A stretch of 63,275 bases of DNA from the NCBI GenBank assembly GCA_002269645.1, contig NIVC01002747.1, positions 1 through 63,275 on the forward strand, written 5' to 3'. Made by a program: the position numbers and the translations under genes. The DNA comes from Macrostomum lignano. Lineage: Eukaryota. Below the pieces are notes generated by a model. The model was not told where the DNA came from. It saw nothing but the letters and a program-made list of their open reading frames with translations, and ran no database searches. Shown piece after piece: positions 10,070 through 18,675 of this stretch (within the stretch, counting starts at the first letter, position 1; every line of letters starts with the position of its first letter).

Positions 10070-13000
10070 ATGAAACTCATCGGCGCCCTGGCCCAACGCC
10101 CACACAACATTCTCCTGTTGAGCAGCGCCTACAACGGACTCACCCAGCGGCTGCATACTCACCTCATGGACCGCGGCCACCGCATCCAGTTCCGACTGGC
10201 TCTCAGCGAGGACAGCATCCAGCGAGATGTGGACGCGGTGAAGCCAGAATTCGTCCTCTGTCCCTTCCTGACACGGCGAATCCCGCCGGCAGTCTGCGCC
10301 AGCCAGCCCTGTCTGGTGCTGCATCCCGGGGTGGTCGCCGACGGTGGCCCGTCATCCCTTGACTGGGCGGTGCTGCGACGCGAAGCCGAGTGGGGTGTCA
10401 CCCTCCTGCAGGCCGACAAGGAGCTAGACGGCGGGCCAGTGTGGAGCCACCGGGACTTCCACGTGCCGGAGGGCAGTAGCAAGGCGAGCCTGTACCGCGG
10501 CCCGGTCACCGACGCCGCGGTTGAATGCGTGGATGAGTTCTTGGTGAAGTTCCGATCTGGCGCAAGGACGCCAAAGCGGCCAGGCGAGATGCAGAAGGCT
10601 ACGGCGAGGGGCGAGTGGCGCGATAGAATGGAGGCGAGTGAGCGGACGGTTGATTGGAGGACAGACGATACGGAGACGGTGCTGCGGAAGGTTCGCTGCT
10701 CGGACAGCACGCCGGGGGCACTTGGATCGCTGCTGGGCCGTCGGTTGCGGCTGTTTGGCGCGCATAGAGAGGAAGGCGAGGAGTTGCGCGGAGAGCCGGG
10801 CCGACTGCTGGCCACGCGGGACGGCGCGGTGTGTGTTGGCGCTGGGAATGGCGCGGTGTGGATCAGCCATGCTAGGGTGGAGGGTGGTGTTAAGCTGCCG
10901 ACGGCAAGTGTGCTAGCTGAGGAGATCAGCGCGGCTGGGGTTGAGGTGAGGGATTGCTTGGGCGTCAAGGAAGGGATGCCGTCAGTTCTGGACTTCGCTC
11001 TACTACCCACACCATTCCTCCGCCCCTTTGCCCCTTCGCTCCTCTGCCCCTCTGCCCTCCACCCCTCCGCCCATCCGCCCCTCCGCCCCTCCGCTCCTCC
11101 GCTCCTCCGCTCCTCCGCCCCTCTGCCCCTCCGCTCCTCCGCCCCTCCGCCCCTCCGCCCCTCCGCCCCTCTGCCCCTCCGCTCCTCCGCCCCTCCGCCC
11201 CTCCGCCCCTCCACCCCTCCGCCCTCCGCCCTCCGCCCCTCCGTCCTCCGCTCCTCCGCCCCTCCGCTCCTCCGCCCCTCCGCCCCTCCGCCCCTCCGCC
11301 CTCCGCTCCTCCGCCCCTCCGCTCCTCTGCCCTCCGCCCCTCCGCCCCTCCGCAACTCTTCCCTCCGCCCCTCCGCTCCTCTGCCCCTCCGCTCCTCTGC
11401 CCCTCCGCCCCTCCGCCCCTCCGCCCCTCCGCCCTCCGCCCCTCCGCCCCTCCGCCCTCCGCCCCTCCGCCCCTCCACCCTCCACCCCTCCGCCCCTCCG
11501 CAACTCTCCCCCTCTGCAACTCCGCCCCTCCGCCCTCCGCCCCTCCGCCCCTCCGCTCCTCCGCAACTCTGCCCCTCTGCAACTCCGCCCCTCCGCCCCT
11601 CTGCCCTCCGCCCCTCCTCCCCTCCGCTCCTCCGCTCCTCCGCCCTCCGCCCCTCTGCCCCTCCGCCCTCCGCCCCTCCGCAACTCTGCCCCTCTGCAAC
11701 TCCGCCCCTCCGACCTCCGCCCCTCCGCCCCTCCGCCCCTCCGCCCCTCCGCCCTCCGCCCATCCGCCCCTAAGCAACTCTGCCCCTCTGCAACTCCGCC
11801 CCTCCTCCCCTCTGCCCTCCGCCCCTCCGCCCCTCCGCAACTCTGCCCCTCTGCAACTCCGCCCCTCCGCCCTCCGCCCCTCCGCCCTCCGCCCTTCCGC
11901 CCCTCCGTCCCTCCGCCCCTCCGCCCTCCGCCCTTAAACAGCCTCATCCCACCCGCACCCATTAACCCACAGGAAGTCCCGTACAGCCCCTTTGGCTCGG
12001 ACCACCGCGCTACCTTCAGAGAGATCTGGTACGAACAGGTAGAGCACGTCGGCATCCTGAACTTCAACTTCAACAACGGCGCCATGAGCACCGACCAGTG
12101 CCGTCGACTCACCGAGGCCTACCGAGAGGCCAAGCAGCTCGACGCCAAGGTGCTCATCCTGCAGGGCAACGGGGATTTCTTCAGCAACGGCATCCACCTC
12201 AATGTCATTGAAGCGGCACCGCGGCCCGAGCAGGTGCGTGAAGTGATGGGAGATAGGACTGCTTCCATCTACGATGACCGAGTGATTGGTGCACTTGGCG
12301 TGGGGGAATTGACCCAGTTGTTAGACTGTCCATGTCACAGCCAGGTGGTTCCAAGAACGAAAACTGGCTGAGCAAAAATAGTTTGTGCCTTTAGTTTTTT
12401 ACGATGCAAGACACTTTATTCCTTGGGTAAGAGAGGGTGAGAGAGGGGATAGGGGAGAGAGGGGAGAGAGGGGAGAGAGGGGAGAGAGGGGGGAGAGGGG
12501 AGAGAGTGGAGAGAGGGAGAGAGGGGAGAGAGGGGAGAGAGGGGAGAGAGGGGAGAGAGGGGAGAGAGGGAGAGAGGGGAGAGAGTGGAGAGAGGGGAGA
12601 GGGGGAGAGAAGGGAGAGAGGGAGAGAGGGGAGAGAGGGAGAGAGGGGAGAGAAGGGAGAGAGGGGAGAGAGGGGAGAGAGGGGATAGAAGGGAGAGAGG
12701 GGAGAGAGGGAGAGAGGGGAGAGAGGGGGAGAGGGGAGAGAGTGGAGAGAGGGGAGAGAGGGGAGAGAGGGGAGAGAGGGGAGAGAGGGGAGAGAGGGGA
12801 GAGAAGGGAGAGAGGGGAGAGAGGGAGAGAGGGGAGAGAGTGGAGAGAGGGGAGAGAGGGGAGAGAGGGAGAGAAGGGAGAGAGGGGAGAGAGGGGAGAG
12901 AGGGGAGAGAGGGATAGAAGGGAGAGAGGGGAGAGAAGGGAGAGAGGGGAGAGAGGGGGAGAGGGAGAGAGTGGAGAGAGGGAGAGAGGGGAGAGAGGGG

Positions 13001-16000: not shown

Positions 16001-18675
16001 TCGAAAAGTGGCTTTTTAGAGATTAGCCAACATTCGAGGGTGTAATTTCCGGCTTTTGTAGACCGTGTCCACGAAAAAGGTAAAAGCTCAGCTAGAACTG
16101 GGAACGATCTTAAATAATTCATTTAACAAATCAGGTTAAATTACGGATGACGCAACAGACAGAAGCGATAGAAAGCCAGCACAACAGGAATGTACGTTCA
16201 TGAGTGTACAAACGTGTAGATACTATTGAAGACGCCCGCAACGCTACTGTGGGAGACAGAGAATAGCTACAGTGCTAGGGGAAGGGAGAGAGAGAGAGAG
16301 AGAGGAGATAGAGGGAGAGAGAGAGGAGATAGAGAGAGGAGATAGAGAGAGAGGATATAGAGGGAGAGAGAGGAGATAGAGGGAAAGAGAGAGGAGATAG
16401 AGAGATAGGAGATAGAGGAAGAGAGAGAGGAGATACGCTCGTAGAGGGAGAGAGGGGAGATAGAGGGAAAGAGAGAGGAGATAGAGGGAGAGAGAGAGAG
16501 GAGATAGAGGGAGAGAGAGAGAGGAGATAGAGGGAGAGAGAGAGAGGAGATAGAGGGAGAGAGAGGAGATAGAGAGAGGAGATAGAGAGAGGAGATAGAG
16601 AGAGGAGATAGAGAGAAAAGATAGAGAGAGGAGATAGAGAGAGAGAGGAGATAGAGGGAGAGAGGAGATAGAGGGAGAGAGAGGAGATAGAGAGAGAGGA
16701 GATAGAGGGAGAGAGAGGAGATAGAGAGAGAGAGGAGATAGAGGGAGAGAGAGGAGATAGAGAGAGAGAGGAGATAGAGGGAGAGAGAGGAGATAGAGGG
16801 AGAGAGGAGATAGAGGGAGAGAGAGGAGATAGAGAGAGAGAGGAGATAGAGAGAGAGAGGAGATAGAGAGAGGAGATAGAGAGAGGAGATAGAGAGAGGA
16901 GATAGAGAGAGGAGATAGAGAGAGGAGATAGAGAGAGGAGATAGAGAGAGGAGATAGAGAGAGGAGATAGAGAGAGGAGATAGAGAGAGGAGATAGAGAG
17001 AGGAGATAGAGAGAGGAGATAGAGAGAGGAGATAGAGGGAGAGAGAGAGGAGATAGAGGGAGAGAGAGAGAGGAGATAGAGAGAGAGGAGATAGAGGGAG
17101 AGAGAGGAGATAGAGAGAGAGAGGAGATAGAGAGAGGAGATAGAGAGAGGAGATAGAGAGAAATAGAGAGAGAGAGGAGAGAGAGAGAGGAGATAGAGAG
17201 AGGAGATAGAGAGAGAGGAGATAGAGAGAGAGGAGATAGAGAGAGAGAGGAGATAGAGAGAGAGGAGATAGAGAGAGAGGAGATAGAGAGAGGAGATAGA
17301 GAGAGGAGATAGAGAGAAATAGAGAGAGAGGAGAGAGAGAGAGGAGATAGAGAGAGGAGATAGAGAGAGAGGAGATAGAGAGAGGAGATAGAGAGAGAGG
17401 AGATAGAGAGAGAGGAGATAGAGAGAGAGGAGATAGAGAGAGGAGATAGAGAGAGGAGATAGAGAGAGGAGATAGAGAGAGGAGATAGAGAGAAATAGAG
17501 AGAGAGAGAAAGGAGAGAGAGAGAGAGAGAGAGATAGCGTTTTAGGTAGCGAGACAGGAGAGAGTCAGAGAGCAAGCCTACGAAGAGTCCACGCTACCAC
17601 ACCGGCGTTCCTGGGTAGTTATTCATCGAAGCATTGCACTAATTCGTACTCTTGCCACTGTCCAAGCAGGAGGCCTGGAGCAACATCTGTGCCATCGACG
17701 ACCTCGTACGCGAGGTGCTCATCAACACGCGCCAGGTGACGGTGAGCGCGGTGCAGGCCAACGCGGGCGCTGGTGGCGTCTTTCTGGCCCTCGCAGCCGA
17801 CCACGTGTGGCTTCGCCGCGGCTGCGTGCTCAACCCGCACTACCGCACTATGGGCCTGTTCGGCTCTGAGTACTGGACCTACAGCCTGCCGAGACGCCTG
17901 CAGAGCTCGGCCACGGCCGCTGAGCAGCTGGTGAACGCCTGCCTGCCGATCTCGGCAGAGCGAGCGTGGTGGCTCGGCCTGGCCGATCGCGTCATCCCCG
18001 GCCACTTCCCTTCTGGCGTGCGACACCAGGCCAAGGGCCTGCTAACCGGGCCGCAGGAAACGGAGGATTTGCTGCGCGCGAAGGCGGCGCGTCTGGCGGC
18101 GGACCGGCCTGTAATGGAGGAGTGTCGGGCTCGGGAGCTGAGCCATATGCGACAGGTGAGGCTTTAATGAGCTTTAAGCCGTTCGCCCCTCCGCCCTTCG
18201 GTACCTCCGGTTCTCCGCCCCTCCGCCCTTCCACCCTTCTGACCCTCCGTCCCTCGGCACCTCCGCCCCTACCACCCTCCGCCCCTCTGCCCCTCCGTCC
18301 GTCCGCCCCTCCGCCCCTCTGCCCCTCCGTCCGTCCACCCCTCCGCCCCTCCGCCCCTCCGCCCCTCCTCCTCTCCGCCCTCCACCCCTCCGCCCCTCAG
18401 CCCCTCCGCCCCTCAGCCCCTCCGCCCCTCCGAGTGAATGAGTGAGTGAGTGAGTGAGTGAGTGAGTGAGTGAGTGAGTGAGTGAGTGAGTGAGTGAGTG
18501 AGTGAGTGAGTGAGTGAGTGAGTGAGTTCGATTAGCATCCAACTGGTAAAGTCTCACCCACCAATACTTCACGCAGGACATGTTCGAACGAGCCGAGTTC
18601 CACGCGGCCCGACGGGCCTTCGTGCGTCGAGCACGAGCGAAAACCACACCGGAGCGGCTGTTGGACCCGCAGGGG
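10070..18675 (+). CDS. hoxX: HypX/HoxX-like formyltransferase plus crotonase-fold protein; exons 10070-10945, 11973-12233, 17670-18155, 18577-~18675 (about 574 aa)
   Basis: [139 protein letters not shown] and [10 protein letters not shown] all match the HypX/HoxX family. Three GT-AG introns are all phase 0 and keep the frame. Start context is GCCATG. Confidence 0.95.
11025..11935. repeat. Degenerate (CCCCTCCG)n-type minisatellite filling HypX intron 1
   Basis: Seen directly; it is the source of the spurious Pro/Ser-rich and Gly/Arg-rich ORFs. Confidence 0.95.
12430..14760. repeat. About 2.3 kb polypurine (GGGGAGAGA)n-type tract in HypX intron 2
   Basis: Almost only G and A on the plus strand. 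Confidence 0.97.
16285..17535. repeat. About 1.25 kb (GAGAGGAGATA)n-type tract in HypX intron 2
   Basis: Seen directly. Confidence 0.97.
18180..18525. repeat. CCCTCCG repeat followed by a (GAGT)n microsatellite in HypX intron 3
   Basis: Seen directly. Confidence 0.9.

Follow-up and report, generated by a model that had tools for sequence, protein, structure and literature searches.

The 63,275-nt stretch analysed here (the window) is contig NIVC01002747.1 of the flatworm Macrostomum lignano (assembly GCA_002269645.1), and its forward strand carries an 11.6-kb, seven-exon gene at 10070–21717 that joins a HypX protein to a folate dehydrogenase/cyclohydrolase (D/C) domain. An earlier note on this DNA had placed a HypX gene with three GT-AG introns at 10070–18675, an interval that corresponds to the 5′ two-thirds of the gene. 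The frame at 18675 is open and contains no stop; all three introns are confirmed, and three further introns follow before a TAG codon ends the gene, giving six in all. Once a single missing G is restored, the gene encodes a 920-amino-acid (aa) chimera consisting of a HypX region of probable bacterial ancestry (575 aa), a linker of 30–45 aa, and an MTHFD1-type D/C domain, which together probably turn a folate-borne one-carbon unit into carbon monoxide (CO) for a purpose other than serving a hydrogenase client. The coordinates of all elements are collected in Table 1.

Mapping of the annotated M. lignano protein P0001 (BOX15_Mlig028590g1, 920 aa, 99% identical, found by database search) onto the window, followed by refinement of the junctions, defines the seven exons and six GT-AG introns. 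Translation of the window from 18577 onward, joined across GT-AG boundaries to the three upstream exons, forms one continuous protein. Pfam analysis of the window translation recovers Formyl_trans_N, Formyl_trans_C, and ECH_1, the layout of HypX, and places PF00763 (THF_DHG_CYH, a D/C family) just 3′ of the HypX part in another frame; for P0001, both PF00763 and PF02882 (THF_DHG_CYH_C) are recorded alongside HypX. Exon 1 is 100% identical to P0001 residues 1–292 and ends at the donor GAG/gtgagg, while the complete frame-restored model differs from P0001 by five substitutions. The three introns within the HypX part are all in phase 0 and all lie at AG/G sites.

The HypX half aligns end to end with HypX of Aquifex aeolicus (6J0P; E=3.2e-136, query residues 13–567 against chain positions 22–570), its best match among solved structures, and the only structures that follow are the N-domain of 10-formyl-tetrahydrofolate (10-formyl-THF) dehydrogenase (FDH) and assorted crotonases. 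The deposited Aquifex chain carries 20 extra N-terminal residues, and residues were therefore mapped with the chain index as the native number plus 20. On this basis, the earlier proposal that the catalytic residues are intact holds at the alignment level: H85, D91, and D120 are equivalent to Aquifex H74/D80/D109, the formyl-transfer triad, and Y437 and E446 to the decarbonylation pair Y416/E426 (Muraki et al., PMC6802093). The Tyr/Glu pair is required for the HypX phenotype in Ralstonia (PMC6802093). Across 213 aligned homologs, eukaryotic and bacterial alike, none departs from these five residues. Additionally, the coenzyme A (CoA) contacts Q15, R131, S194, N306, and R542 of the Aquifex enzyme (PMC6802093) are kept as Q26, R143, S213, N327, and R559, while a further contact position, Q195, is occupied by Thr in Macrostomum and varies among bacteria too. 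The protein thus shares with HypX/HoxX of Aquifex and Cupriavidus necator the formyltransferase-like and crotonase modules, the H/D/D and Y/E sets, and the CoA contacts, and is 40–49% identical to bacterial members. Unlike these, it is encoded by a nuclear, intron-containing gene, carries a short N-terminal extension and a C-terminal D/C domain, and stands in a window without hyp or hydrogenase neighbours.

The C-terminal half is best classed as a eukaryotic MTHFD1-type D/C domain. Among solved structures it matches the D/C domain of human MTHFD1 best (1DIA/1A4I; 260 bits over residues 2–293), while bacterial FolD reaches no more than 177 bits and MTHFD2 148 bits. The top database matches are animal C1-THF synthases at 43–46% identity, with scores of 204–256 bits for animal MTHFD1 and at most 202 bits for bacterial FolD; that search did not list the fusion proteins, for which the D/C comparisons come from our own alignment. 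In a neighbour-joining (NJ) tree, 96 of 100 bootstraps group the D/C halves of Macrostomum and of related marine transcripts (described below) with MTHFD1-type sequences, apart from FolD and from the fusion proteins of Chloroflexi. Both Pfam domains are present, as are the signatures VGDRxDSNxYI and VIDCG, which the marine sequences share, and the catalytic residues Y659, K663, Q707, and D733, which correspond to MTHFD1 Y52, K56, Q100, and D125.

This half differs from MTHFD1 in several respects. It lies C-terminal to HypX, whereas the D/C domain of MTHFD1 lies N-terminal to formyl-THF synthetase, and a 7-aa PDxxKxSG loop, retained in the marine sisters, is deleted in Macrostomum. Moreover, the positions of MTHFD1 R173 and S197, which we take from the MTHFD1 literature to be the contacts of the NADP 2′-phosphate, are Asn and Val with acidic neighbours (GNSNMVG and CDVDT, against GRSKIVG and CHSKT in MTHFD1); the marine sisters carry Glu at the S197 position, within CHE(Y/H)T. 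These replacements suggest use of NAD+ or an altered activity in Macrostomum and the marine clade. The intron positions differ as well. MTHFD1 genes of a skink and a millipede, whose exons were placed by exact-match chaining, share four D/C introns (DVDG/L, TG/V, EV/S, and IP/D), none of which coincides with any of the three Macrostomum D/C introns. A derivation of the D/C half from the host MTHFD1 gene by exon shuffling was rejected on this ground.

Table 1. Elements of the HypX–D/C gene in the M. lignano window (window coordinates; residue numbers refer to the frame-restored 920-aa protein)
Feature	Position	Strand	Description
Exon 1	10070–10945	+	aa 1–292; start ATG; formyltransferase-like N-domain and Formyl_trans_C subdomain
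H85 codon	10322–10324	+	Aquifex His74
D91 codon	10340–10342	+	Aquifex Asp80
D120 codon	10427–10429	+	Aquifex Asp109
Intron 1	10946–11972	+	GT-AG, phase 0; mainly CCTCCGCC-type minisatellite (11017–11933)
Exon 2	11973–12233	+	aa 293–379; start of ECH/crotonase domain, including N327
Intron 2	12234–17669	+	GT-AG, phase 0; 5.4 kb; arrays flank 1.5 kb of unique AT-rich sequence
Intron 2, first array	12430–14746	+	AGAGAGGGG
Intron 2, second array	16286–17537	+	GAGAGAGGAGATA
Exon 3	17670–18155	+	aa 380–541; crotonase core with Y437 and E446
Y437 codon	17841–17843	+	Aquifex Tyr416
E446 codon	17868–17870	+	Aquifex Glu426
Intron 3	18156–18576	+	GT-AG, phase 0; CCTCCGCC-like repeats and a (GAGT)n run
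Exon 4	18577–18994	+	HypX C-terminus (to about aa 575), Ser/Asp-rich linker, start of D/C
Frameshift site	18683–18685	+	GGG in the window (GTCAGGGTGGTG); GGGG in the paralog L005, NIVC01002353.1 (GTCAGGGGTGGTG); DNA comparison
Y659 codon	18927–18929	+	D/C residue, numbered after restoration of the frame
K663 codon	18939–18941	+	D/C residue, numbered after restoration of the frame
Intron 4	18995–19421	+	GT-AG, phase 2; splits the Arg codon in LPR/TTSY
Exon 5	19422–19717	+	D/C catalytic domain (Q707, D733); start of Rossmann domain
Intron 5	19718–20931	+	GT-AG, phase 1; VVIG/NSNM
Exon 6	20932–21147	+	NAD(P)-binding domain: GNSNMVG ... CDVDT ... VIDCG
Intron 6	21148–21508	+	GT-AG, phase 1; NPDG/QGLV; (CTGC)n-type run
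Exon 7	21509–21717	+	End of D/C (PVPGGVGP motif); TAG at 21715–21717; 100% identical to the paralog

The assembled window copy loses the fused frame at the junction of the two modules. Past the missing G, the HypX frame continues for 115 out-of-frame residues and stops after aa 692. The gene annotated on this contig is BOX15_Mlig011095g1; the protein deposited for it (P0213, 692 aa) equals the uncorrected window translation and owes its truncation to the missing base. The fused frame is kept in P0001, in P0214 (Mlig011095g2), and in the UniRef models P0215 and P0217; among these other copies, one locus (L005) was compared at the DNA level, and the rest are annotated gene models. The missing G may be an error of the assembly at a homopolymer or, alternatively, a mutation that inactivated this copy very recently. 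With the obvious donor/acceptor pair, a search for a canonical small intron joining the HypX and D/C frames found none, the outcome being a TGA. A 74-nt GT..AG interval at 18685–18758 would restore the frame if spliced, yielding an 895-aa product without most of the linker, although its use as an intron is unconvincing.

The paralogous locus is collinear with the window and 96–98% identical to it over more than 25 kb. The exons differ at 15 of 2762 positions (about 0.5%), with the frameshift site as the only indel, while the non-repetitive sequence of intron 2 has diverged by about 4.5% (identity about 95.5%) and contains many gaps. By the Nei-Gojobori method, 10 of the differences between the two copies are synonymous and five non-synonymous, giving a ratio of non-synonymous to synonymous rates (dN/dS) of 0.17; under neutrality, so small a number of non-synonymous changes has a binomial P=8e-4. 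The exons thus appear to be under purifying selection, as measured between paralogs, and selection on the gene had also been inferred in the earlier note.

That the window copy is a decaying paralog with a real deletion, which could yield no more than HypX followed by a meaningless tail while the intact Mlig028590g1 and Mlig011095g2 carry the function, is a serious contender whose chances fall slightly short of even. The GGGG of L005, the truncated deposited annotation, and the presence of several near-identical copies in M. lignano, of which one could be dispensable, all speak for it. The indel is, however, the sole one in 2.76 kb of coding sequence, and every other difference, 15 in all, is a substitution, synonymous changes being in strong excess; any inactivation must therefore be very recent. 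Moreover, the assembly was built from long reads, and the site is one of the homopolymers at which single-base indel errors are typical of such assemblies. Splicing of the candidate interval could also, in principle, restore the frame. The window copy may thus itself be broken, while at least two other annotated gene models retain the fused frame. Expression is only implied, by the model P0214, which begins with translated 5′-untranslated sequence.

Relatives were sought with a profile built from five fusion proteins. HypX–D/C fusions occur in marine eukaryote-like transcripts (P0002, P0003, P0006, P0008, and P0121) from Tara Oceans metatranscriptomes and the RNA-seq runs DRR256864-74 and ERR6349663; no spliced leader is recognisable at the 5′ or 3′ ends of these transcripts. 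Further fusions are found in the bdelloid rotifers Adineta steineri and Rotaria socialis, the heterolobosean Pharyngomonas kirbyi, the glomeromycete Cetraspora pellucida, and a ciliate. All eukaryotic fusions resemble the Macrostomum protein in possessing both modules and every HypX catalytic residue, and the marine ones also share its MTHFD1-type D/C half. The rotifer, ciliate, and Pharyngomonas proteins follow the Macrostomum domain order, with D/C halves that are divergent and not clearly of the MTHFD1 type. In Cetraspora P0184 the order is reversed, with D/C at residues 19–297 and HypX at 376–902; P0367 (919 aa, from a library of representative sequences) has the same layout. The Cetraspora gene (L020, 5001–7739) is intronless and lies on a gene-poor contig of 27–40% GC.

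The rotifer, fungal, and ciliate fusion genes are all intronless. In Rotaria socialis the gene (L017, 6001–8952) is an uninterrupted 2952-nt open reading frame (ORF) amid genes for RMI1, a Cys-loop channel, and a Hermes transposase; ordinary animal genes together with a Hermes-type transposase are the usual picture for foreign genes in bdelloids. The ciliate protein P0185 was recovered from metagenomes on contigs of about 3 kb in three independent assemblies (L022, L023, and L024), both ends of which are capped by (CCCCAAA)n/(GGGGTTT)n (in L022, positions 1–50 and 2990–3046). This is the telomere repeat of Chilodonella (PMC5760741), and the contigs are therefore single-gene ciliate nanochromosomes. 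The true start of P0185 is likely an upstream ATG (MRKHTKNILLL...).

Dozens of bacterial fusions of 850–925 aa were also found, the named ones belonging to Ktedonobacter/Chloroflexi metagenome-assembled genomes. When 1.84 billion cluster representatives were searched exhaustively with the profile, only about a dozen clusters of fusion length emerged. The Chloroflexi/Ktedonobacter HypX–FolD proteins (for example P0149, P0165, P0145, and P0162) match the Macrostomum protein in domain order and HypX catalytic residues and are similar to it in length. They differ in carrying a bacterial-type FolD (VIDVG, short loop), the motif YSKAI, and a linker of 50–70 aa, and in belonging to another clade. Their loci (L013–L016) share a conserved upstream 2-hydroxyacid dehydrogenase gene and a 132-aa ORF, and the two P0145 loci (L015 and L016) also have a downstream amidohydrolase gene in common. 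The flanks available for these fusion loci contain no hyp or hydrogenase genes; in particular, none lies within 3–10 kb of two of the Chloroflexi loci or of one stand-alone bacterial HypX locus.

The Macrostomum protein begins with a basic N-terminal extension of 12 aa and most other eukaryotic members with one of 24–96 aa, against a bacterial median of 1 aa; the ciliate sequences are the exception, so that the eukaryotic range is 0–96 aa. Such extensions are compatible with organelle targeting and hint that folate-dependent CO synthesis could take place in mitochondria.

Phylogenetic analysis of the HypX half used 205 sequences, 542 columns, and 100 bootstraps. In the resulting NJ tree, Macrostomum groups with the marine transcripts at 99% support, and the wider group that includes Cetraspora has 51%; all eukaryotic fusions, together with one bacterial stand-alone HypX, form a cluster with 18% support. 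The Macrostomum HypX half as a whole lies among bacterial HypX proteins, with eukaryotic fusions as its immediate sisters. The Chloroflexi fusions form a distinct HypX clade (100% split) and are separate in the D/C tree too. As for identity, the Macrostomum HypX half is 47–49% identical to actinobacterial proteins, 44–50% to its marine sisters, and 38% to the rotifer protein. Because the named HypX matches are nearly all bacterial, and because the actinobacterial identity equals that to the nearest eukaryotes, it is plausible, and most economical, to derive the HypX half from bacteria.

The gene of the Macrostomum clade is thus best described as chimeric, with HypX of the bacterial type and D/C of the eukaryotic type, and its MTHFD1-type half implies that the joining took place in a eukaryote. 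The fusions of Chloroflexi and, with its reversed order, of Cetraspora arose separately. The view with which the earlier note had approached the locus, namely that a bacterial gene was acquired and gained introns, is retained for the HypX half and gives way to the chimera for the gene as a whole. Nor is the acquisition shown to be specific to Macrostomum, since the nearest relatives are eukaryotic fusion transcripts and the family recurs patchily in a heterolobosean, a ciliate, a fungus, and rotifers; the eukaryote-wide cluster, the grouping that would have spoken for vertical descent, is the one at 18%. One metagenomic relative (P0181) reads as a single ORF through four of the Macrostomum intron positions, and this, together with the phase-0 AG/G introns and the unmatched D/C introns, fits a gain of introns after an intronless arrival.

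If, instead of a recent transfer from a bacterium, the gene were an ancient eukaryotic one that descended vertically and was lost on a massive scale, or that passed from one eukaryote to another, this would account for the joint clustering of all eukaryotic fusions, for members across Metazoa, Fungi, Ciliophora, and Heterolobosea, and for the eukaryotic character of the D/C half in the Macrostomum clade. This account is nevertheless improbable. The cluster on which it draws is the weakly supported one that also takes in a bacterial stand-alone HypX, and the Macrostomum HypX half is nearer to actinobacterial proteins than to that of rotifers. Furthermore, the Cetraspora domain order differs, the distribution is extremely patchy with intronless genes in rotifers, the fungus, and the ciliate, and the Macrostomum D/C introns lie off the conserved animal MTHFD1 positions.

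The chimera is read as a probable folate-dependent source of CO, and the chemistry, cofactor use, and role that we infer for it are set out here as a sequence of steps. D/C domains convert methylene-THF (CH2-THF) to 10-formyl-THF. In the Macrostomum protein, this domain would first oxidise CH2-THF and hydrolyse the resulting CH+=THF to 10-formyl-THF, possibly with NAD+ rather than NADP+. In HypX, 10-formyl-THF gives up its formyl group to bound CoA at the N-domain, and the crotonase domain decarbonylates the formyl-CoA so formed to CO (PMC6802093; PMC12134894). The H85/D91/D120 triad would likewise pass the formyl group to bound CoA, and Y437/E446 of the crotonase domain would then decarbonylate formyl-CoA to CO and CoA. 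Overall, a one-carbon unit would leave the folate pool in the form of CO, without a [NiFe]-hydrogenase to receive it. This line from CH2-THF to CO is proposed because the catalytic residues of both modules are present and because the modules have been fused repeatedly. Possible purposes include CO as a signal or ligand, or a one-carbon overflow that regenerates THF.

The arrangement parallels that of FDH (ALDH1L1/ALDH1L2), which has a homologous N-terminal formyl-THF-binding domain, connects it through a pantetheine arm to a second catalytic domain, discharges the one-carbon unit, and regenerates THF. In FDH, however, the second domain is an aldehyde dehydrogenase that forms CO2 with NADP+, and the arm belongs to an acyl-carrier-protein-like domain; in the Macrostomum protein the arm would be the bound CoA, and the second domain a crotonase-fold decarbonylase from which CO is expected. 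This homology (E about 1e-10 between the N-domain and the FDH/ALDH1L1 hydrolase domain) also underlies a different proposal, that the protein makes no CO: formyl-CoA would be its end product, or it would hydrolyse 10-formyl-THF or simply bind folate like the ALDH1L1 N-domain. Although no CO client is known in animals and some members of the family have a degenerate D/C active site, such an outcome seems quite unlikely: Y437, E446, and the CoA contacts are invariant in some 200 homologs, every eukaryote included, and an idle crotonase domain would not stay at 45–50% identity.

Several observations weigh against a CO-forming enzyme fed by its own D/C domain. The position of MTHFD1 K56 is Ile, within YSKAI, in 51 of 52 bacterial fusions (P0122–P0173), and marine P0008 has H/I/E at the Y52/K56/D125 positions; with the canonical cyclohydrolase Lys missing from the Chloroflexi fusions and from P0008, the D/C module is not always a catalytic supplier and may be non-catalytic in some lineages. 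In Macrostomum itself, the replacement of both presumed NADP 2′-phosphate residues makes the activity and cofactor of the D/C half uncertain, and the window copy as assembled amounts to a HypX part with a nonsense tail. The trees are NJ only, with 18–51% support at the deep nodes. Finally, the CO chemistry assigned to the eukaryotic members is a prediction from sequence, and the presumed absence of hydrogenase and hyp genes from M. lignano is based on this window and on what is generally known.

To our knowledge, the sole role described for HypX is to supply, under aerobic conditions, the CO ligand of [NiFe]-hydrogenases in bacteria, and we know of no [NiFe]-hydrogenase in animals or protists. 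Bacteria and archaea are the groups for which such enzymes are described (PMC12134894). Within the collection of papers searched, nothing relevant was found on eukaryotic HypX, on fusions of HypX with FolD or D/C, or on horizontal transfer in Macrostomum. As judged from the fusions above, HypX has been welded to a substrate-making enzyme independently at least twice, and probably three times or more, in different architectures. This repetition provides a Rosetta-stone argument for a route from CH2-THF to CO outside hydrogenase maturation, because the modules have been fused independently and because the eukaryotes concerned have no known client. Collectively, these features point to an undescribed folate-to-CO pathway in some eukaryotes. 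If correct, it would be a second enzymatic source of CO in animals and, alongside ALDH1L1, another way for one-carbon units to leave folate metabolism, as well as a clean case of bacterial and eukaryotic-type modules united in one gene that acquired introns later. More tentatively, scattered aerobic eukaryotes (the flatworm, bdelloid rotifers, ciliates, a heterolobosean, a glomeromycete, and marine plankton) might each hold a haem-oxygenase-independent, folate-dependent CO synthase built of bacterial HypX and D/C, supplying CO for signalling or a metal-carbonyl cofactor, or disposing of one-carbon units; for so broad a claim the balance is tilted toward doubt. M. lignano is amenable to transgenesis and RNA interference, and the CO route is therefore directly testable in this animal.

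The surroundings of the gene are of host type. Minisatellites like the intron arrays occupy the whole window, and among ten large ORFs scanned in it, Pfam finds only ankyrin and protein-kinase domains, eight being without a match. None of the ten matches a hyp or hydrogenase family, a scan that covers this window; the earlier statement that no hyp or hox partner occurs here therefore stands for these ORFs, while overlooking the D/C partner fused to HypX itself. The GC content at third codon positions (GC3) is 0.69–0.79 in the gene and 0.73 in the host kinase ORF. Bacterial contamination of the assembly, which a high GC content (GC3 0.79) and strong similarity to bacterial HypX might suggest, was rejected in agreement with the earlier argument and can be set aside almost entirely, given six spliceosomal GT-AG introns with host-type minisatellites, a collinear paralogous locus, at least three annotated gene models in the assembly, and flanking ankyrin and kinase ORFs, the latter with similar GC3.

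Two further repeat features were noted downstream of the gene. About 600 bp 3′ of the stop codon, at 22345–23094, lie 15 near-perfect copies of a 50-bp unit beginning GTTAGGGTTAGG, which comprises two telomere-like TTAGGG motifs; the paralogous locus carries a shorter version of this array. In the region 30140–63275, the ORFs are without a Pfam match, apart from a protein-kinase fragment at 29648–30460, which extends into the first array. This part of the window is unusually rich in long minisatellites (periods 15–65 bp), examples being 53 copies of a 31-mer at 53451–55094 and a (TGTC)229 run at 34488–35404.

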